Source: Adineta vaga (lineage: Eukaryota; Animalia; Rotifera). Taken from it: a stretch of 64,000 nucleotides of DNA. Position numbers and translations under genes: made by a program. The DNA lies in NCBI GenBank assembly GCA_021613535.1, contig CP075493.1, positions 10,292,001-10,356,000 on the forward strand. The letters are read 5' to 3'. A model generated the notes under the pieces. It made no database searches. It was not told the origin of the DNA and saw only the letters and a list, made by a program, of their open reading frames with translations. This document shows, piece by piece, positions 29,136 through 43,935 of the stretch (positions are counted from its first letter, which is position 1; each line of letters begins with the position of its first letter).

Positions 29136-30246
29136 AAAAAGTTGTTTTTGTTTGCTTCTACAAAGTTTGATTTATGTAAAGAGAATGTAAAAAAAGCGAA
29201 TAATGTGTTGTTTTTTTAAGCTAGGAGAGAACGAACGAGAGTGATCGATTCTTTTCAATGTAAAGGTGACTTATTATAGAAATTTCGATCGCACAACATG
29301 GCAATGATGACTCTCGGATCCGATTGGATTTAGATCATTTCCTCTAAGTATATGTTCATAATTGAAATACATTCTGTTAAATAAGCTGCCATCTGAGTTG
29401 GTATGGTTACTAGTGTATTTTTCACCCAGGACCAGATCATGAATTGTAACCTTGGTAGTCATACCGTAAAAAGCATTTTTCTTTGTGAATTACGAATATT
29501 TATCCGAAACACAAAGAGTAGTATCTACATGCCATTAACACTGAAATAGCTATCATCAAATCTGTTTTAACTTGACTTTCTTATGTTTCTATATTGTGAA
29601 TACCTTATCATTTATTATCCGAGTGATCAGTGTGTATTAGACAATGTCTGCATCTCGTTATACTTGTCTAAGAATTCCCTGTAACATATGCCATTTCAAT
29701 GTCATCGCTGCCACTATTGTATGTATTAAATTTATCCATTTTTAGACTCCATATTTTTTACGTCATACTTCTGCCAATCGTAAAACAGAACCAAAAGCAG
29801 CGCATCAATTTCGATGAAAACCACCATTAGATTATACATACATCATATTTCATTATTCTACTGCAGATACTTAGCCTTCATCGCCTGTTGACGATTATCA
29901 ATAATTATTTGCTAGGCTTCATATTCTTAAAACTTTTATCATCCAAAACTCAAACTAGCATTTAATTTGCCTTCTTATTTGACATATGTTCTTCAATCTA
30001 CTTTTAAACTTTAATTTCGTATCACGCTGCAAAAGTAAACACTGAACTGTTATATATTATCCAACATCTGAAACATGATCAGCCAATTCCAAAAGGCTGA
30101 AAGGAATCGCAGGTGCAACTTCAAATTCTTTCAACAATAAGAAAAGATTTCCATGCTAATTTGACGATAAAACTTTTATTTCAATTGAAATATTCTTCAG
30201 TTTTCCTTTGTTATCAAGTCCTCTTAACATTCCCACAATATTTCAG

Positions 30247-31717
30247 CTATGATGCAATTTTTAGTTTGCTGTTTCTTTGTTGTGCGACCCGCAAATATTG
30301 TGCACCCTTCTCTCCGATTTGATTGTTGTAGAGGTCGAGTGTGGTGAGTGTCTGAATGAAACGAGCAATACTAGCATGAAAGAGGGAGAGATGGAAACAT
30401 CAGTGGACTCACCGTGTTCTGTCGTAATGCATCACTCAGATGTTGTGCACCGATCTCTCCGACTTGATTGCTTGTGAGGTCGAGTGTGGTGAGTGTCTGA
30501 ATGAAATGAACAATAGTGGCATGGAACAGGGAGAGATGGAAACATCATTGGACTCACCGTGTTGTGTCGTAATGCATCACTCAGATGTTGTGCGCCCTTG
30601 TCTCCGATTTGATTCCGAGAGAGGTTGAGTGTGGTGAGTGTCTGAATGAAATGAGCAATAGTAGCATGAAAGAGGGAGAGATGGAAACAACATTGGACTC
30701 ACCGTGTTGTGTCGTAATGCATCACTCAGATGTTGTGCACCTGCATCTCCGATTTGATTGCCTCCGAGGTTGAGTGTGGTGAGTGTCTGAATGAGATGAG
30801 CAATAGTAGCATGAACAAGGGAGAGATAAAAACACCAGTGGACTGACCATGTTGTGTCGTAATGCATCGCTAATATATTGTGCACCCTTCTCTCCGATTT
30901 GATTGCTTGTGAGGTAGAGTGTGGTGAGTGTCTGAATGAAATGAGTAATAGTAGCATGAAAGAGGGAGAGATGGAAACATCAGTGGACTCACCGTGTTCT
31001 GTCGTAATGCATCGCTAATATATTGTGCACCCTTCTCTCCGATTTGATTGTTAAAGAGGTTGAGTTTGGTGAGTGTCTGAATGAAATGAACAATAGTGGC
31101 ATGGAAGAGGGAGAGATGGTAACATCATTGGACTCACCGTGTTCTGTAGTAATGCATCACTCAGATGTTGTGCGCCCTTGTCTCCGATTTGATTCCGAGA
31201 GAGGTCGAGTGTGGTGAGTGTCTGAATGAAATGAGTAATAGTAGCATGAACAAGGGAGAGATAAAAACACCAGTGGACTGACCATGTTGTGTCGTAATGC
31301 ATCGCTAATATATTGTGCACCCTTCTCTCCGATTTGATTGCTTGTGAGGTAGAGTGTGGTGAGTGTCTGAATGAAATGAGTAATAGTAGCATGAAAGAGG
31401 GAGAGATGGAAACATCAGTGGACTCACCGTGTTCTGTCGTAATGCATCGCTAATATATTGTGCACCCTTCTCTCCGATTTGATTGTTAAAGAGGTTGAGT
31501 TTGGTGAGTGTCTGAATGAAATGAACAATACTAGCATGAAAGAGGGAGAGATGGAAACATCATGGGACTCACCGTGTTCTGTAGTAATGCATCACTCAGA
31601 TGTTGTGCGCCCTTGTCTCCGATTTGATTGCTTGTGAGGTAGAGTGTGGTGAGTGTCTGAATGAAATGAGTAATAGTAGCATGAAAGAGGGAGAGATGGA
31701 AACACCAGTGAACTCAC
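30247..31717 (-). repeat. Tandem array of ten 145-bp units, each an 84-nt LRR exon plus a 61-nt intron
   Basis: Exon 5' ends at 31656, 31511, 31366, 31221, 31076, 30931, 30786, 30641, 30496 and 30351 (exact 145-bp spacing). TTCAG acceptors; GTGAGT/GTCAGT donors. Consensus TLTTLxLxxNQIGdkGAQhLSDALrxNT. Terminal exon ends RNSKLKIAS*. Confidence 0.95.
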
Positions 31718-34700
31718 CGTATTCTATCATAGAACTATATTAGGATGTGTTAGTCGCTCTGTTAAGAAAGTAGTTAAAATTAATAGGACTATTCGACTGA
31801 TTATAAAATTGCTACGATCCTTAGTCATAATTACTCATTTCGGTTCGCTGAACAATCAGTGTTGTCCATCTGGGTCAGTGTATGAAGGAAACGTCTAAGT
31901 GATCTAGAACTTGGTTTATGGATGAGAAAAGGTTTGCTCTGATGGAATTCGACGATGTATGAACTGAAACTAAATATTTCTTGATACGAGAGAGAATACA
32001 TGTGTCGTTTCTAAAATAGTTGCAATATGCATCATCCTATCATTATCAAGAGATAGGAATTGGCATATTAATATTCAGGGGTAAAGATAAGCTTCATTAG
32101 TACGTGACATACGGGACCGTTGACGGTCTACCACTCACTCAGTTGTTGACTTGATGAGGGAGAATAATCCTTCTTAGGAATCTCAAAGGTCAACATTACA
32201 TACAACCAGTTAGTGTAGCATATTTCCATTCAAAAATACCATAGTAACTAACCGATCAGGATGCTTCTTGCCTAACTTTAACTACTAGACTCAACACACT
32301 AGTTTCAGAATTTCAGATGAGACACATGAATAAGAACAGTTCAACTATTGTGAAAAACCTACAGTTACCTGAAACAATATAGGATCTTTCTAATACCAAC
32401 AATATGAACCTAGGGAAACACACAATAATACTCTCTCAAATGTTTTACTCGACCACTTTATACACATAGATTTCTATGAGATTTGGAAATAATAATTTCG
32501 ATTAGAGTTGGGTAAAATTATGATTTCACATTAGAATCATTAAATCTAAATTTCTCGATATTTATTTTATTTAAAGAGCCGAGGGAGAAATCGTGCACTG
32601 TAGATTAGGTCATTTCTTCCACGAAACGATCGACCTTGATCATAAATATCCTCTTCCAAAGAATCATCCACTAAACACTTCGATATCACAAGATAGATAG
32701 CACCCTTTATGACAAAAAATGACGCATATTTTGCATCTACAAATAAATGGACATATCATAGTTAGTCGATTTAGTTGAAATTCGTCTGCTCATACTTTCA
32801 AATCACAAATATTGACAGAGTATGAATTTATATCATCGAATACATCGTCACATAATCGAATCGGACAAAAAGAAAGTGTCTTGAAAACTTGCGCTATACA
32901 AATACATTTCGTACATATAATGACATGTACAACTAGCAATAAGAAAATATGTATTAGACCGTTGCAAGGAAATGGATTGTACAAATATCATAGAAATATA
33001 TTGTGTAAACGACTACAGAAAGACAGGGACATGACTTCTCTCACGATTCCGTATCAAAAGAGCACAAATAATGATTAGTAACTGCAATATAATTATGAGT
33101 AATCTTTTTCCTTATTCGAACCAATGATCGTCGTTGCACTGTTTGGTCAAGTTTGAATTATCACTCATATTAGAAATTGAAATGATGACACATATCATAG
33201 TGTCAGGGTTAAGAGATTCAAAAGGCAAACGTCACATGTCTGTATTTGGTTCCTGAACAAATCTTTCTCTTTCAACAAACATCTGCCGCTTGTTTATTCA
33301 TTATTTAACATTTATCAGAACTTCACACAACTTTCATTTGTTCTACCGCCGAATCTCAAAGACCAAAAGAGTTCCTTTGAAAATAAAAAGTTACTGCTAG
33401 CCGTTCTGACAATTCTGTATGCTATTCAGATTCCAAACATATTGTTGTGATAACAACAAATGTCTCATTCAAACGCTGTTTCGTTCTTCAACACAAAACA
33501 TCTTTTAAACAGAATTCTCAACTTTTGCATATCTTCTCAGAATATTATTATAGAAAGTCAAATATATGCATAGATAGAACATGTAAAACAATACTTTTGA
33601 TAGCGCACGATATTAAAATGTCTTATATGCATGATATAGCGTTGCCCAAAAATATAAAATAAACAAAAGTTAACCTTGATCATACCGAATGTGTATGATA
33701 TATGTTATAGCAGTTCATTAACTACTCAGATATGTGCATCGATTCTATGTCAATGCATAAAAACTACTCAACATGTTAATCAACGTATTTGTGATAGAAT
33801 TCCAAATGCAAACAGAGATCTACTTCACTATGGATTACTCAATGATGAAAACTAGTCTTGTCAAATATTTCAATTGAATTCCTAACATATTATACACCTA
33901 ATAAAAATATTCATCACATATAGAGTACACAACTCTACAAAACTCCAAAATCTGTCTACTTCATAATTCTATAGTGGATGACGTTTGTTCACAAGATCTC
34001 TTCAACCAGCAAACATCTTCTAGAACATGATCATCAAACCTAACAGCATTTTCATTAAGTCAAAGAAGTATATTTGAAATACAAATTAGATTCTAAGTAT
34101 CTTCATTTCGAATCAAAAATCCAATTCTTATAGCCTACTTTTTGAAAACACAACTGCCTCATCTTAACGATATCAACTTATACACCAATATTTTCACAAT
34201 ATACACTTTCATTTGCAATACTACAAAGAATTGAGATGATGACTTCAAAAAATGCAATTCTGACACAATTTCTACTATGAAACATAATCGATCTACTGAT
34301 GAGATGAAAAAAACTCTATCGAATGAACTATATCTGCATTTGCATTCCACTATAAATGGCATCTACTTCTGTGAATTCTGGTTTTTCTTAAATAGTTTCA
34401 CGAAAACGAATGTTACTCACTTTGTTTTCTTGTATACAATAATAAGCCACTATTTCCATATCTTCCGCAGTCATTTTTTTGTAGCATAAGTTTAATTCAG
34501 ATTGGTCTTTCTGATCAGCAATAAGTTTTTCTAGTGAAGCATTTCGATATAAAGGTTTGGGTAGTTTCTTGATTATCGGTTGTGTTGTGATGGAAGTTGT
34601 GATTTTAGTTTTAGTAGCCGATGGTTTTATACTTGAAGTTGAATCTACAAAAAGATGAACCCTTTCACATAGACATTATTAGTGATATTAGGTGTTTTGT

Positions 34701-35940
34701 CGTTTCCAATACAGATATTCATTTGTTCTAACTTGACACATCAACATATAGAAACAGATGAAATACTATCACAAATCAACAATCTCTTTCATTAGATTCG
34801 TAAGAACTTCTTCACATCGCTCATTACATCATTAGTGTACTGGATAACATCAATGGACATGAGAAGTACACAACAGTGCACTTCTACTGCTATATTTGTA
34901 CTTTCAAAGAAGAATAACTTCATCACAATAAAGGTTTGGGTCGAATATGTAAAACGTTTCTATTACTTATGGAAACACAATATTCTCATTATATCTCACC
35001 AATCTAACTCATTGGAAAGACTTTATGTTTCAACTTTTTGAGTCGGTTTGATTGTATTTTTACTAGTGAAACTCATGAGAATGATGTACACTTTATTATC
35101 CATGTTTATTATATGCTACAATTCCAGTTTGCTCTGATCTATTGACTCAAAATCTTATTTTTATTTACCTGCTATCGCAAGATTCTTTGGTTGAACAGTT
35201 ATAACTGATATTGGTTGTAATAATGGAAATGGTGGTCGCGTTTCTCTTAGTTCAATGATATGAAGACTGCCTTGGTCGAGGATACCACTAACTCGAAATT
35301 GAGTGGCAGCAAGAAGTAATACTTCATCTTCAGCTGCAAAATAAGAATGTTTATGAATATCTCTTGCTGATTCGCATTCTACATTGAAGATTGTTCGAAC
35401 ACCTGTTTTTCCTAAGAATTGTTCGGATTGAAGGACACTAAGAGAAACAGTACAGGATGAAAAACCCCACCAAACTACGGTTTCTCCTTCGATATATCTT
35501 TTCTTCATGTCTAATTTGACACCTCGGTAAGCCTTTTTGTGAAGCGGTGGTAGTCGAAACAATGCATTGAGAAAAAGTCTCAAGTAAAGATACCAAGGTT
35601 TGAGTTTTTGTTGTCGATCAGAAGATCGTAATGTTTCATTGAGAACAGTATAGAGACATTCATCCAATGGTTCCCATCCCATCGTATAGAGCATGATGGA
35701 AGCAGATTCATCTTGTGTTAAATCATCAGCAGGTTTCTTACATCGTTGTTTAGCCACATATGCATGACTTTGAACTTCTGGTAGAATAGGAACAAGTGGT
35801 TCTACTGCTTCTTCGAGTGAAACCAATGGTACCTTAGCATAACCACTAATAGGTGCAAGAAATTCGAGAGGCTCATCCGCAATATCAGTCATACGTAGAA
35901 CACGTTGAGCAAGAGCTTCTCCTCCACCACCTACAGCCAT
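30247..35940 (-). CDS. ADP-ribosyltransferase (R-S-E type) fused to an RI/NLRC3-type LRR array; reconstructed 12-exon gene with a +1 frameshift in an A7 run
   Basis: ART exon 35940-35169 (phase-1 donor) splices to linker/cap exon 34644-34421, which splices to ten LRR exons between 31656 and 30247. Removing one A from the run at 34474-34480 gives ...LQKMTAEDMEIVAYYCIQENK|TLTTLYL..., all in frame. Confidence 0.7.
34421..34644 (-). CDS. Thr/Lys-rich linker plus LRR N-cap exon of the ART-LRR gene
   Basis: TTTTGTAG acceptor at 34645 and GTGAGT donor at 34420. Reads DSTSSIKPSATKTKITT...LYRNASLEKLIADQKDQSELKLMLQK then, after the A-run, MTAEDMEIVAYYCIQENK. Confidence 0.72.
35161..35940 (-). CDS. ART domain exon (arginine-specific mono-ADP-ribosyltransferase type)
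   Basis: Catalytic motifs AYRGV (R), WWGFSSCT (S-x-S-like strand) and YFAAEDEVLL (E-x-E). The ORF ends over a GTAAAT splice donor at 35168. Confidence 0.9.
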   Translation of the reverse strand: MAVGGGGEALAQRVLRMTDIADEPLEFLAPISGYAKVPLVSLEEAVEPLVPILPEVQSHAYVAKQRCKKPADDLTQDESASIMLYTMGWEPLDECLYTVLNETLRSSDRQQKLKPWYLYLRLFLNALFRLPPLHKKAYRGVKLDMKKRYIEGETVVWWGFSSCTVSLSVLQSEQFLGKTGVRTIFNVECESARDIHKHSYFAAEDEVLLLAATQFRVSGILDQGSLHIIELRETRPPFPLLQPISVITVQPKNLAIAGK

Positions 35941-37259
35941 ATCGTGTTGCAAACAATTTGGTACTAAATTTATTAATAGGGTGGAAAAATAAGCATTCTA
36001 GTTTTCTTATTTTAGAACTCACACTAACGATCAGTCGAGATTGATATAGTTTCAAATGTAAAAGAACGTTTGTTGTATAAAATCACTGAGATTGTTTCGT
36101 TTTGATATCAGAATAGACTATTTCATTTCTTCCGCGCACGTGTTCTTATCTAGTTGGTATTTACCTATGTTTTTCTTTCAAAACGAAGGTAACTTTCTTC
36201 TGAAAAAGATCGTGATTCATTACATATAAACGATATTTCGAACACACAATCAACATATATTGCTAATAGTAGAGATGATTTTAGAACAAATCGTCATATG
36301 TATATCGGATACAATTGCAACAAAGACCTTTTGCATCCATCCTAAATAATAAGTTTTCTTCAATAAGACTTCTTTGCAGTGAACTCTTTGAATGATATTT
36401 TCAATAATTCGTCTCTGTTCAGAGAATTATAATGATGATTTTTGTTAGAACAAGGTCAACTATGAATATATTGTCACTTCTTTTGATACTTTATCAACAT
36501 TAACAATTCTCTTCTCGTTTTGTCTTTTATTATTCTTGTAGTATATACAACTATTGATGCAGTACAAGTAAGTACAAGCAAAGGCATGAATAAATTGACA
36601 ACGACAGTATATGTAGTCCACTTCATAATTGTTAGAATAAATTAATATGATGGGTCTCTATCTCTCTCTCTTGCGCGCGCACGCTTCTTTTTCTATTGCA
36701 AAAGAATCGCCGCATTTTATTACGCTACTTCCGTTTCGTTATGAATCGATCATATAGATATATATATATGAAGAAGGAACTAATTTGTGTGACATTTTTT
36801 CCTCTCCCATGCCTTTCCAATTCGATTTTTCAAAGATCTGTCATCGCCATGATCAAACAAACGAGAGAAGAGAACAAAATCCGGAAACGAGCCTTTCTTC
36901 TTCTTCTTTAAAGGTATTAAGAAGAAAATCTACTTATGTCATTATTCAACGACTTTAATACTTTACCACAGAAGAAATTTTCACTCAACTAACTACATCC
37001 TATTACTTGAAAAGTATTTCTGATCTAAATCGTGGACAAAATGTGTCTACACACAAGGATGGAACAAATGAGTTCATTCGTTCATATCGAATAAATCGAA
37101 CGAGCAAGAGAACAGAAAAGAAAAGAAAAGAAGAGAGAGAGAGAGGGAAAGAAAGAAAAAAAGAGACAAACACATTCTCTCCACAATCATCACGCACACA
37201 TTGAAAAAAAAATCGCGACCGATACACTGGCTAATTTGAACGTTTGATCATTATCCTAC

Positions 37260-40974: not shown

Positions 40975-42530
40975 ATGCATACTAATCGAGTGTACAGTGA
41001 ATTTGTTGATGAAAACATGAAACCACCGAAATGGTGGCGTCGTCGTTGGTTCAAGATTGCTTGTATTTCTTTTGTTGTTTTTGCTATTGTTGCGACTGCA
41101 ATTACATTAGCACTCGTATTTACTGTTTTTAAACCAAAGCCTGAAGAATTAACCAATAAGACGACAATATCAATACCAACAACTCAACTATCAACATCAT
41201 CTGTAGTGACTGCAATTCAGACTACGATGCAGCAAACTAGCATAGGTAGTATCTTTGAGTCGTATTCATTTTCTGGTTTTGATTGTACATATCTTTTATT
41301 TTAAGAAACGTCGACGATCCCGACGACGATGACCACGACGTCGACGATCCCGACGACGATGTCTACGATGTCGACGATCCCGACGACGATGTCCACGACG
41401 TCGACGATCCCGACGACGATGTCTACGACGTCGACGATCCCGACGACGATGTCCACGACGTCGACGATCCCGACGACGATGTCCACGACGACGACGATTC
41501 CGACGACGATGACGACGGACACTTCAACTATAGAGACAACTGTAATTACTACTACCCAACAATCAAGTATGAGCTCTATATTGTTGTTCGATTTTATTTT
41601 AAGAGGATGTTTGTAGTTTCTATTGCAGTTACGACCAGTTCTGATTGGACGGAAAATGGTACTGTGATAGCTGGAGGAAATGGAGCAGGAAATAAAACTA
41701 ATCAACTGAATTATCCTCATGGAATCTACATCGATAATAATAATCGAATGGTTTATATAGCTGATTATAATAATGACCGTATTGTTCGATGGAAATATGC
41801 TGCAATCGATGGTGAAATTATTGCAGGAGGTAATGGTGAAGGTAGTCAAATCAATCAATTGAGTTTACCAACAGCTGTTATTTATGATTCAAAAAATGAT
41901 TCGGTGATCATTTGTGATCAAGCAAATCGACGTATAGTACGATGGTCTTGTCGAAATCAAGCAGATCAACAGATTATGATTTCGAATATTGATTGTTTTG
42001 GTTTAGCATATGATTCTAATGGTGATCTTTATGTATCTGATTTTGTACAAAATGAAGTTAAGCAATGGAAAGAGGGAGAAACGAATGGAATAGTTGTTGC
42101 CGGAGGAAGTGGAAGAGGCGATGGATTGGATCAATTCAATTCTCCTGGTTATATTTTTGTTGATCAGAATCAATCAGTTTATGTATCTGATGTTAATAAT
42201 AATCGTATAATGAAATGGATGAAAAATGCGACAGAAGGACAAGTTGTTGCAGGTGGACAAGGTGTAGGAAGTAATCTTACACAATTATCTAATCCTGAAG
42301 GAATAACAGTAGATAATTTGGGTAATATTTATATAGCTGATTATGGCAATAATCGAATAGTATGTTGGTTAGTTGGAGCTACGGAAGGTAGCATTATTAT
42401 TGATGAAGATGATACTATAGAACAGTTCTATCAATTACGAAATCCTACGGGTTTAACATTAGATCAACAAGGAAATATTTATGTTGCTGATCAGTGGAAT
42501 CATCGTGTACAAAAATTTATTCTTCATTGA
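40975..42530 (+). CDS. Type II membrane protein: TM anchor, Thr-rich mucin-like stalk, NHL beta-propeller
   Basis: Exons 40975-41245, 41306-41566, 41629-42530 join in frame. TM IACISFVVFAIVATAITLALVF. NHL repeats IAGGNGAG...QLNYPHGIYID...VYIADYNNDRI and GNIYVADQWNHRVQKF. Confidence 0.9.
41308..41516 (+). repeat. Coding 30-bp minisatellite (about 6-7 copies) encoding TSTIPTTMST
   Basis: Unit ACGTCGACGATCCCGACGACGATGTC(C/T)ACG repeated; GC-rich relative to the flanks. Confidence 0.9.
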
Positions 42531-42742: not shown

Positions 42743-43935
42743 TCATAAGGATTTTGTTGTTGATTGATCTTTCACTGCGCCTTTAATTACACTTAATGAT
42801 GGTTGAAATGCTTCAATATGAATATGTGAGGATGGATGATTACATTCTTTTAAGATTTCTTCCACTTTATCCATAAATGGTACTGATCCACAAATATATA
42901 CTTGTGAATCTGGTTTTAAAACCTTTTGTAATATTACTTTTTCTAATCGTTGATCACCACATAATAGATAATATTGATCTTTGTCTAAAATCGATTGAAG
43001 TTCTTCACTAAAAGCAGCATGTTCCTTCGTTTGTGTACAATGAATTAATGTTGCAGTATTATTTTTGCCTTGTTTCTGTAACTGTTTAATCATAGAGGAA
43101 AGAACTGTTATACCAATACCACCAGCAATAAATACATGATGTTTACCATCATCAATCAATGCAAATGTTCCAGCTGGAAAACTAGCTAAGATTGTATCAC
43201 CTTCTTTATAATTATCAATAATTTCATTTGAAACAACACCTTTTGGTTCACGTTCGATTTCATCTTTAATTGCTACACGATAAGTTTTACCATCGAATGG
43301 TTGAAGTAAACTGTAATGTCGATTATGAAAATTACCATCTTTTTTAATACGAAGTGTAAGATATTGTCCTGGTTGATAATCAAACATCTTTCCATGATCA
43401 GGACGTTCTAATGTTAATGCAACAATAGGTCCACTGGCAACTTGTTCCTTTTTAACGATAGTAAATGGAACAAAACCTTTATCTTGTTCATCTGGACCAA
43501 GTTCATCGTAGAGTTGTTTTTCTATGTCAATAAAAATTTGTGCAATAATACCATAAGCAGCTGCCCATGCACATCGATGATCTCTTGTGTCGACTTGTCA
43601 CCGAGAAATTCTTTGATTGCCATTAATAGATATTTACCAACAATAGGATAATGTTCAGGTAGAACAGTTAATGCACGATGTTTATGTGCAATAAGTTTAA
43701 CTTGAGGCATGAGAACATCTAAATGATCGATATTTTCTGCTGCAAAATAGATGGTATTAGCTAAGGCTAATGGTTGTGAACCAATTTTTTGATTCGTTTG
43801 ATTAAAAATATCTAACAGTTCAGGATGATTACCAAACATATGTTTGTAGAAAATGGATGTAATTTCTTTTCCATTTTCTTTAAGAATAGGTGCTGTTGAT
43901 CGAACAATATTTTTTTGTTCATCAGTGATTGACAT
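42743..43935 (-). pseudogene. Flavohemoglobin (NO dioxygenase, Hmp/Yhb1-like), intronless, 2-nt frameshift (pseudogene or assembly error)
   Basis: Globin domain (STAPILKENG, FNQTNQKIGSQPLALA, IAHKHRAL, PEHYPIVG), FAD domain (YQPGQYL, RHYSL) and NAD domain (IAGGIGIT, YICGSVPFM). Deleting the AC at 43571-43572 restores IDAWAAAYG and one 396-aa ORF. Confidence 0.9.

Follow-up and report, generated by a model that had tools for sequence, protein, structure and literature searches.

Architecture of the ART-LRR locus

The window analysed here comprises 64,000 nucleotides of contig CP075493.1 of the bdelloid rotifer Adineta vaga (assembly GCA_021613535.1, positions 10,292,001 to 10,356,000), whose genome spans 100.8 Mb in 6 contigs at about 30% GC. 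On the minus strand, between 30247 and 31725, lies a tandem array of leucine-rich repeat (LRR) exons. It encodes the recognition domain at the C-terminal end of the product of an expressed gene, in which an ADP-ribosyltransferase (ART) domain is linked to LRRs. The product of about 618 residues is made up of the ART domain, a Ser/Thr-rich linker, a degenerate first LRR, and ten LRRs. A preliminary description of this DNA had singled out the array and overlooked the gene to which it belongs. Its assignment of the array to an animal agrees with the nearest public proteins, all of which come from bdelloid rotifers of the genera Rotaria, Adineta, and Didymodactylos (Rotaria socialis, Adineta steineri, and Didymodactylos carnosus).

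To resolve the exon structure, contigs from the RNA-like runs X12 and X14 and from the DNA runs X1 and X2 were compared over 30100-36050. Runs X12 and X14 show no depth in introns and thus behave as RNA; the depth tables of the public runs are unreadable as copy number. The RNA contigs contain GT..AG joints at 36023/35963, 35169/34644, 34421 to the start of an LRR exon, and 31573/31511, together with spliced loose ends at LRR exons 5, 6, and 9. The features of the gene, all on the minus strand and in the order of transcription, are as follows.

36023..36075, minus strand: exon of the 5' untranslated region, 3' end; joint 35963/36023 in run X12; stops in all three frames near its end
35964..36022, minus strand: 59-nt intron; joint 35963/36023 in run X12; GTGAGT...TTTAG, read as CT..AC on the plus strand
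35169..35963, minus strand: ART exon with the ATG at 35940-35938, 257 amino acids plus one base of a split codon; Pfam ART match; RNA cover over 35169-35963
34645..35168, minus strand: 524-nt intron; joint 35169/34644 in run X14; GTAAAT...TGTAG; no RNA depth over 34677-35074
34421..34644, minus strand: linker exon of 224 nt, entered in phase 1 and left in phase 0; RNA contigs 34428-34646; only frame +2 open
31657..34420, minus strand: 2764-nt intron; RNA joint from 34421; no RNA depth over 31692-34278
31573..31656, minus strand: LRR exon 1 (YLTS); open frame; the RNA joint 31573/31511 removes the following 61-nt intron in both RNA runs
31428..31511, minus strand: LRR exon 2 (NLFN), same sequence as exon 5; open frame, unit comparison, and RNA
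31283..31366, minus strand: LRR exon 3 (YLTS), with its upstream intron the same as unit 6; open frame and unit comparison
31138..31221, minus strand: LRR exon 4 (DLSR), a chimera; 3' part as in exon 1, codons 8-9 as in exon 8
30993..31076, minus strand: LRR exon 5 (NLFN); RNA loose end indicating splicing at 30993
30848..30931, minus strand: LRR exon 6 (YLTS); RNA loose end at 30932 that reads the end of exon 5
30703..30786, minus strand: LRR exon 7 (NLGG), upstream intron with donor GTCAGT; RNA contig 30712-30787 with 0 differences
30558..30641, minus strand: LRR exon 8 (NLSR); open frame
30413..30496, minus strand: LRR exon 9 (DLTS); RNA contigs 30422-30497 with 0 differences; spliced loose end at 30413
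30247..30351, minus strand: terminal LRR exon 10 (DLYN), followed by a short tail and, at 30247-30249, the TAG stop; Pfam LRR_6 match with E 7e-4

Since every frame of the upstream exon meets a stop close to the exon end, translation is taken to start at the ATG at 35940. The phases agree along the transcript: the ART exon closes with the first base of a split codon, the 224-nt exon is open only in the frame that continues it, and the LRR exons then follow in phase 0. The linker exon encodes 74 amino acids, which comprise the Ser/Thr-rich linker and the degenerate first LRR. It has no Pfam match, and a homologue is present in two other ART-LRR loci. Within 30247-36023, the RNA contigs reveal no further exon, and the 3' untranslated region reaches at least to 30194, with RNA contigs covering 30194-30284.

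The joint that leaves the linker exon at 34421 was placed at 30931, with only 30 letters on the LRR side. Since the first 30 nt are the same in LRR exons 1, 3, and 6, the parsimonious reading is a junction with exon 1 at 31656, which gives the intron of 2764 nt. This intron ends in a relic array unit of 61-69 nt (31657-31725), whose GTGAGT at 31717 is not used. The preliminary description had treated 31657-31717 as the first intron of the series; this had to be corrected, as frame 0 meets a stop two codons upstream and the segment forms the 3' end of the 2.76-kb intron. An exon adjoining 31717 on its upstream side was likewise discarded, the RNA placing the real exon at 34421-34644.

The LRR array consists of symmetric cassettes

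Tandem Repeats Finder reports a single strong array in the window, located at 30298-31725, with a period of 145 bp, 9.8 copies, 87% matches, 0% indels, and a score of 2131. Cut at the donor at 31717, the minus strand falls into ten units, each composed of a 61-nt intron and an 84-nt exon. The ten units of exact 145-bp period without indels that had been described from the letters are thus recovered. All ten LRR exons are open in phase 0, so that the nine internal 84-nt exons form symmetric cassettes, as had also been proposed, and exon 10 reads through to the TAG stop. The array introns start with the donor GTGAGT (GTCAGT in two of them) and end in the acceptor ...CAG. GC content amounts to 0.47 in the exons and 0.42 in the introns, compared with 0.33 in the flanks, in line with the GC enrichment noted before.

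The exon consensus reads T-L-T-x-L-x-L-x-x-N-Q-I-G-x-x-G-A-Q-x-L-S-D-A-L-x-x-N-T, and its 28 residues correspond to one LRR. All ten exons fit the pattern xLxxLxLxxNxIGxxGAxxLxxAL. Matched against Pfam LRR_6, single exons reach 27.1 and 28.6 bits (cut-off 23.4), which places the repeats in the ribonuclease-inhibitor type. From 5' to 3', the motifs that hold the variable (x) positions are YLTS, NLFN, YLTS, DLSR, NLFN, YLTS, NLGG, NLSR, DLTS, and DLYN, an exact match in all ten to the earlier list.

An assembly artefact, in which the array or its number of units would stem from mis-assembled repeats, is extremely improbable. Short-read contigs cannot span the array, which leaves room for such an error. 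However, the sequences specific to exons 7 and 9 and to the terminal exon recur in independent RNA runs with 0 differences, and DNA contigs from two studies cover the region. The units differ at 46 of the 145 columns in an ordered mosaic, and an array of 1.45 kb is far below the length of long reads. Furthermore, a paralog and dozens of similar arrays exist in the genome.

Footprints of recombination and an inverted paralog

Comparison of the units with each other revealed blocks of identity of different extent. Over their 145 nt, units 3 and 6 show no difference. Exons 2 and 5 have the same sequence but introns with 5 differing sites, and introns 4 and 7 differ at 2 sites but go with exons that differ at 13. 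A perfect repeat of 294 bp (30802-31095 = 31237-31530), offset by 435 bp or three units, marks a recent duplication of three units. Five nucleotides separate exon 4 from exon 1, all of them within codons 6, 8, and 9. It matches exon 8 in codons 8-9 and differs from it in codons 6, 25, and 26. Exon 4 is therefore a chimera, whose 3' part equals exon 1 and whose codons 8-9 equal exon 8. Consequently, part of what had been described as drastic multi-nucleotide change consists of existing patches that were reassorted, not of new mutation.

An inverted paralog is located 81 kb away (G000:C1:10400064-10404985, loci L021/L022). It is colinear with window positions 31021-35950 and 92.9% identical over 4.9 kb. 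The parts of the gene compare with the paralog as follows.

ART exon: 96.4% identity, dN/dS 0.27
Single-copy introns: 93-95.6% identity
Linker exon: 88.4% identity, dN/dS 0.83
LRR units: about 85% identity, compared without positional orthology

The paralog has 5 LRR units compared with 10 in the array, and its fourth LRR exon contains an in-frame TAA. Comparison across the two arrays gave 12-19 differences per 84 positions for internal exons and 1-10 per 61 for introns; the terminal exon of the paralog differs from the array exons at 25-29 positions. Positional orthology between the arrays is absent, every unit being about equally far from every unit of the other array. Together, the 294-bp repeat, the chimeric exons, and the 10 versus 5 units show that unequal crossover or gene conversion reshaped the array, and the preliminary description was borne out in naming these two processes.

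Two further observations concern the paralog. Its homology covers little more than the gene body with its introns: it sets in 10 nt ahead of the ATG and ends near codon 19 in the last LRR exon, with unrelated flanks on both sides. This suggests either that gene conversion acted between old copies or that the coding region set the limits of a duplication. The linker exon diverges more between the paralogs than the adjoining introns do, with changes clustered in the Ser/Thr-rich part and at exposed positions of the degenerate LRR.

Sister arrays and ancestry of the exon structure

The genome was searched at the DNA level with three units as the query. This returned at least 165 matching segments, which were grouped into at least about 35 loci. 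Among the sister arrays that were fetched, the number of cassette exons ranges from 10 to 35, the largest array lying on C6 across two of the fetched loci. Their periods are 139-167 bp, and they combine a near-invariant scaffold with variable codons 6, 8, and 9. ART heads four arrays, namely the present array, its paralog, and the arrays at C1:4473890 and C1:4822065, the latter two of which share the linker exon too. The other arrays sampled are headed by a conserved F-box exon in five of five cases.

F-box-headed arrays with 84-nt exons and periods of 139-149 bp: L024, L026, L027, L030, and L031 (C6:1199xxxx, C5:1508xxxx, C2:1156xxxx, C6:1211xxxx, and C1:681xxxx)

The F-box (PF00646) was detected in two of these sister arrays with 22.3 and 22.2 bits (cut-off 20.5), and the head exons of the rest are 73-97% identical to these two in amino-acid sequence. 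No F-box exon was found in the window between 28000 and 38000. An ART domain at C2:11577560 was considered as the head of the C2:1156xxxx array and ruled out, since an F-box exon lies directly upstream of that array. Several F-box-headed arrays show higher-order repeats of 2-4 units.

An ART-LRR gene of Rotaria socialis (P0151, L034) shares this architecture, with ART, a linker carrying the same degenerate first LRR, and then LRR exons. More specifically, it contains six 84-nt phase-0 LRR exons separated by introns of 52-58 nt, and its repeats are ordinarily diverged. The structure of one exon per LRR therefore predates the split between Adineta and Rotaria. This comparison indicates that the one-LRR-per-exon layout is ancestral in bdelloids and that the turnover of units is the recent part here. 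In the ART-LRR gene of Adineta steineri (L032), a strict pattern found no 84-nt cassette exons; this gene is a more distant subfamily with diverged repeats.

Variation is concentrated on the predicted binding face

In the ribonuclease-inhibitor-type LRR fold, L2, L5, and L7 face inward to the core; the concave sheet and the loop that follows it carry x4, x6, x8, and x9. An AlphaFold model of the Rotaria socialis homologue (P0151:270-504), which is not the product of the window itself, has a pLDDT of 88 and a strand/helix period of 28 residues, in which frame positions 4-6 form the strand. In the PDB, the model is best matched by ribonuclease inhibitor, NOD2, and NLRPs, with TM-scores of 0.78-0.88.

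Within the array, the raw nucleotide p-distance reaches 0.426 at codons 6, 8, and 9, compared with 0.085 at the other 75 exon positions and 0.102 in the introns. The drastic changes are thus concentrated on the exposed x codons, as had been claimed from the letters. The accompanying claim that the introns stay highly similar is right as to their distance of 0.102, but whole exons are nearly as alike (0.121), with the introns only slightly ahead, and the contrast exists only with the x codons. Of the 50 minimal changes among the 13 internal units that the array and its paralog have together, 18 fall in codons 6, 8, and 9, a share that only 0.06% of codon triplets reach. Amino-acid entropy is 2.09 bits at codon 8, 1.95 at codon 9, and 1.23 at codon 6, followed by codons 14, 15, 11, and 4.

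The same excess was found in seven of seven arrays (115 exons), six of them further arrays from the same genome. In all of them, the nonsynonymous distance at codons 6, 8, and 9 lies at 0.33-0.51, which corresponds to 2.2-6.4 times the intron distance and 1.8-11 times the synonymous distance of the scaffold. Sites faster than neutral were judged by these intron and scaffold distances. We infer that the excess at the x codons is best explained by diversifying selection on predicted ligand binding.

Alternatively, the pattern could be a neutral by-product of a young tandem duplication under relaxed constraint or en route to a pseudogene, in which the x codons are the least constrained and keep old differences. 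A scaffold pN/pS of about 0.9 in the array would fit such a course, as would the paralog with its in-frame TAA and half the units, the dN/dS of 0.83 of the linker exon, and the many family copies that carry stops. Yet relaxed constraint cannot exceed the neutral rate, and the x codons outpace the introns: they are 4 times more diverged than introns situated 15-27 nt away in the same units, and seven of seven arrays show the excess. The gene is also transcribed and correctly spliced with ten open exons, and the ART exon is under purifying selection (dN/dS 0.27). On balance, we regard a purely neutral origin as quite unlikely and favour diversifying selection.

The ART domain and a model for the ART-LRR protein

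The ART exon matches Pfam ART (PF01129) with an E-value of 1.9e-12 and 47.5 bits (cut-off 22.3), covering profile positions 51-217 of 222. In a 30-sequence alignment, R139, S161/S162, and E204-x-E206 are invariant or at least 90% conserved. The assignment of these putative R, S, and ExE residues comes from reading the motif, which they follow in order and spacing. A phmmer search of the ART domain against PDB sequences gave no match. The conservation of R139, S162, and E204-x-E206 fits an active mono-ADP-ribosyltransferase of the R-S-ExE type. Since no hydrophobic signal is evident by reading at the N-terminus of ART, the ART-LRR protein is probably cytosolic.

The genome contains at least 150 ART copies, a minority of which have stop codons, and a representative library holds 3692 relatives. 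In public bdelloid proteins, ART is fused to LRR_6, NHL, TPR, kinase plus MLKL_N, or PBZ modules, and proteins with ART and LRR_6 were found in Rotaria, Adineta steineri, and Didymodactylos. These fusions amount to a large effector-plus-repeat repertoire.

A separate observation was made inside the ART exon. A joint at 35474-35683 skips 208 nt with the ends CT..AT, which form no splice pair, and it occurs in both DNA and RNA runs. The joint belongs to another genomic copy or allele of the ART exon, one that lacks those 208 nt.

Overall, the locus is probably best explained as an ART-LRR recognition gene in which in-frame recombining cassettes are combined with diversifying selection on the binding face. 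The ancestral structure of one LRR per exon makes each unit a symmetric cassette. Units that are about 90% alike misalign, and recombination then adds, removes, and recombines them in frame, altering their number and order; in this array it gave rise to the three-unit duplication, the chimeric exons, and twice as many units as in the nearest paralog. The same process would keep the scaffold and the introns homogeneous. Selection would keep or drive apart the codons predicted to contact the ligand (6, 8, and 9, then 14, 15, 11, and 4). With less certainty, the LRR horseshoe may bind a variable target, plausibly one of a pathogen or of another genetic conflict. The bound target could be presented to ART for ADP-ribosylation, or binding could release the activity of ART. 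The version with substrate recruitment is favoured, since the same cassettes sit behind F-box heads in most sister arrays, where by analogy the repeat would act as the substrate receptor.

Several points weigh against this explanation. The public runs provide only short contigs, too short to verify the number of units in the assembly. Nei-Gojobori pN/pS within the x codons is 0.7-0.9, below 1. This ratio is uninformative, as the replacement of whole codons brings in multi-step paths by which pS is inflated. The argument for selection accordingly draws on the introns and the synonymous sites of the scaffold, relative to which the excess appears. Pairwise comparisons of repeats are non-independent, and recombination confounds any tree. 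With its pN/pS of about 0.9, some relaxation of constraint in the scaffold is possible, and many of the differences among the x codons may stem from old patches that were reassorted, not from new mutation. The in-frame stop in the paralog points to birth-and-death turnover. Finally, the functional model, including ligand, enzyme activity, and immune role, is derived from domain architecture.

By analogy with NLR proteins, the LRR domain could instead fold back on ART and keep it off, until a ligand frees a toxic ADP-ribosyltransferase for cell-autonomous defence. An N-terminal effector followed by C-terminal LRRs of the ribonuclease-inhibitor/NLR type resembles NLRs, and the structures nearest to the Rotaria homologue model include the LRR domains of NOD2 and NLRPs. 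Relatives also carry ART heads joined to NHL and TPR repeats, in the manner of effectors in conflict systems. However, neither NACHT nor NB-ARC is located between effector and repeats, where only the 74-aa linker exon lies and the RNA shows no other exon. Lacking a NOD module, the gene does not belong to the NLRs. The same cassettes also serve F-box heads, in which they would by analogy be substrate receptors. We therefore consider such a switch conceivable but rather unlikely, and retain recruitment of a substrate to ART as the favoured version.

Splicing and probable germline diversification

Both RNA runs contain a junction at 31138/30351, which connects a 3' end of the exon 1/4 type to exon 10 and skips 786 nt, corresponding to five units and one intron. 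In depth it resembles the constitutive junctions, and the DNA runs do not contain it. Short de Bruijn contigs carry the junction and extend only 20 letters on one of its sides, a length as expected for such contigs, since the path branches at base 11 of the next exon. Skipping of five cassettes and a second, unassembled haplotype in which the array is shorter explain it equally well. No rearrangement within the array is seen in the DNA runs, whose short contigs could not reveal one. We infer that diversification took place in the germline over evolutionary time, and not somatically.

The preliminary description had proposed a diversity generator driven by unequal crossover, gene conversion, or combinatorial splicing. 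As stated above, crossover or conversion stands. A dedicated generator finds no such support: the evidence is all of germline change, and the layout is inherited and shared by at least 35 loci. A generator within the individual would give many receptor forms through skipping or combination of cassettes, or through changes in array length that arise somatically or between lines. The internal exons, all of 84 nt and in phase 0, would keep any subset in frame, and the junction at 31138/30351 is present in both RNA runs and not in the DNA runs. On the other hand, a haplotype with five fewer units accounts for this junction equally well, consecutive junctions are seen for other exons, and no joint in the DNA runs points to rearrangement within the array. 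The Rotaria relative, moreover, keeps the same exon layout with ordinarily diverged repeats. A generator of this kind is accordingly very unlikely.

It is just as doubtful, and at most a long shot, that the cassettes are used combinatorially within a clone, by regulated exon skipping or by frequent mitotic change in array length. If this were true, one asexual lineage would express many ART-LRR and F-box-LRR specificities from a few dozen loci. An animal would then possess a recognition repertoire that arises from repeat shuffling and is coupled to ADP-ribosylation or ubiquitination of the bound target, and the junction between the exon 1/4-type end and exon 10 would be the first trace of combinatorial use. 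Germline recombination of cassettes under diversifying selection remains the reading that we prefer.

Comparison with known repeat systems

The closest parallels were compared with the array feature by feature. In the LRR-ROCO genes of the brown alga Ectocarpus, positive selection acts on the concave face of LRRs that are encoded by 72-nt exons in phase 0 (Zambounis et al. 2012, PMC3341825; follow-up PMC11378527). Both systems place one LRR in a phase-0 exon of fixed length that is duplicated and shuffled, and both have a hypervariable concave face; the algal genes form a large family with fast turnover and are proposed pathogen receptors. Exon-per-repeat shuffling applies to the rotifer array as well, in view of its symmetric exons and of a unit number that varies between 93%-identical paralogs (10 versus 5). 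In contrast, the algal repeats are of the 24-aa plant type with a ROC-COR GTPase partner, whereas those described here are of the 28-aa ribonuclease-inhibitor type with ART or F-box, so that neither the partner nor the LRR subtype is shared. Introns in Ectocarpus are long and contain inactivated LRR exons, also on the opposite strand, whereas the introns of the rotifer array have 61 nt and are about 90% alike.

Repeat arrays of ciliates likewise consist of exon-plus-intron units with a fixed exon length, and their unit number varies among paralogs, which has been ascribed to unequal crossing over. They differ in their exons, which measure 90 bp, in their introns of phase 2, and in a link to a LINE-like element and to the processing of germline and somatic genomes. 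No retroelement was seen adjoining the rotifer array, for which no systematic search was made.

Fungal NLRs carry WD, ANK, or TPR repeats of high internal conservation (PMC4986451, PMC12222747). Like the rotifer arrays, they combine near-identical repeats maintained by concerted evolution, polymorphic repeat numbers, and varied effector heads with a few hypervariable positions on the binding surface under diversifying selection. Hypervariability of the binding surface in this fungal sense was found here at codons 6, 8, and 9, at 2.2-6.4 times the intron distance in seven of seven arrays. The fungal repeats, unlike those of the rotifer, are not LRRs and are not split by introns, and NACHT or NB-ARC is present. 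The mean amino-acid identity between repeats of the array amounts to 77.5% (83.9% without codons 6, 8, and 9), below the 85% over at least 100 residues that defines high internal conservation; two sister arrays reach 86.7% and 87.1%. Such highly conserved repeats are rare in metazoans, with 0.8% for ANK, TPR, and WD (PMC4986451).

Among animal proteins, the LRRs of ribonuclease inhibitor and vertebrate NLRs belong to the same subtype, with 28-29 residues that form a strand and a helix. The ribonuclease inhibitor gene and several NLR genes also have modular LRR exons. Their repeats, however, are old and diverged, with no ART head and no recent turnover of units. Lamprey variable lymphocyte receptors are similar in having LRR cassettes with variable residues on the concave face. 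They differ in that the germline gene is incomplete and is assembled somatically from flanking cassettes, whereas the germline frame of the rotifer gene is intact and the RNA contigs match the genomic exons without differences. With vertebrate Arg-specific ecto-ARTs and bacterial R-S-ExE toxins, the rotifer domain shares the match to Pfam PF01129 and the putative R, S, and ExE residues. Unlike those enzymes, it has no match to a solved structure by phmmer and no evident N-terminal signal, is fused to LRRs, and occurs in at least 150 copies.

Expansions of the LRR, TPR, and NHL families in A. vaga have been remarked on (PMC3846280), and ADP-ribosylation appears in A. vaga papers as a Gene Ontology enrichment that the authors discuss as PARPs. 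We found no paper that analyses these expansions, and none that describes cassette arrays of the ART-LRR or F-box-LRR kind in bdelloids. The regime observed here is known from brown algae, ciliates, and fungi and is barely described in animals.

Neighbouring genes in the window

Other features were observed outside the ART-LRR gene. An NHL-repeat open frame lies on the plus strand at 41283-42530 (Pfam NHL, E 3e-35). In it, the NHL repeats are preceded by a 30-bp tandem repeat at 41308-41511 (6.8 copies, 94% matches), which encodes an Asp-rich tract. On the minus strand at 42743-43935, a globin frame and then an FAD/NAD-binding reductase frame are adjacent to each other. This pair looks like a bacterial-type flavohaemoglobin gene that is split by an intron or a frameshift, and its horizontal acquisition is possible.

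Implications for bdelloid biology

As animals of ancient asexuality, bdelloid rotifers raise the question of how they keep up with their parasites. The gene class described here shows homogenised repeats, changes in unit number between close copies, and divergence of the binding face at several times the rate of the introns. Its two kinds of heads, ART and F-box, would mark the bound target. If these are recognition proteins, they would represent a new effector-sensor architecture in animals, ART-LRR without a NOD module. They would also offer a testable route to receptor diversity without sex, through mitotic or repair-driven recombination of cassettes.

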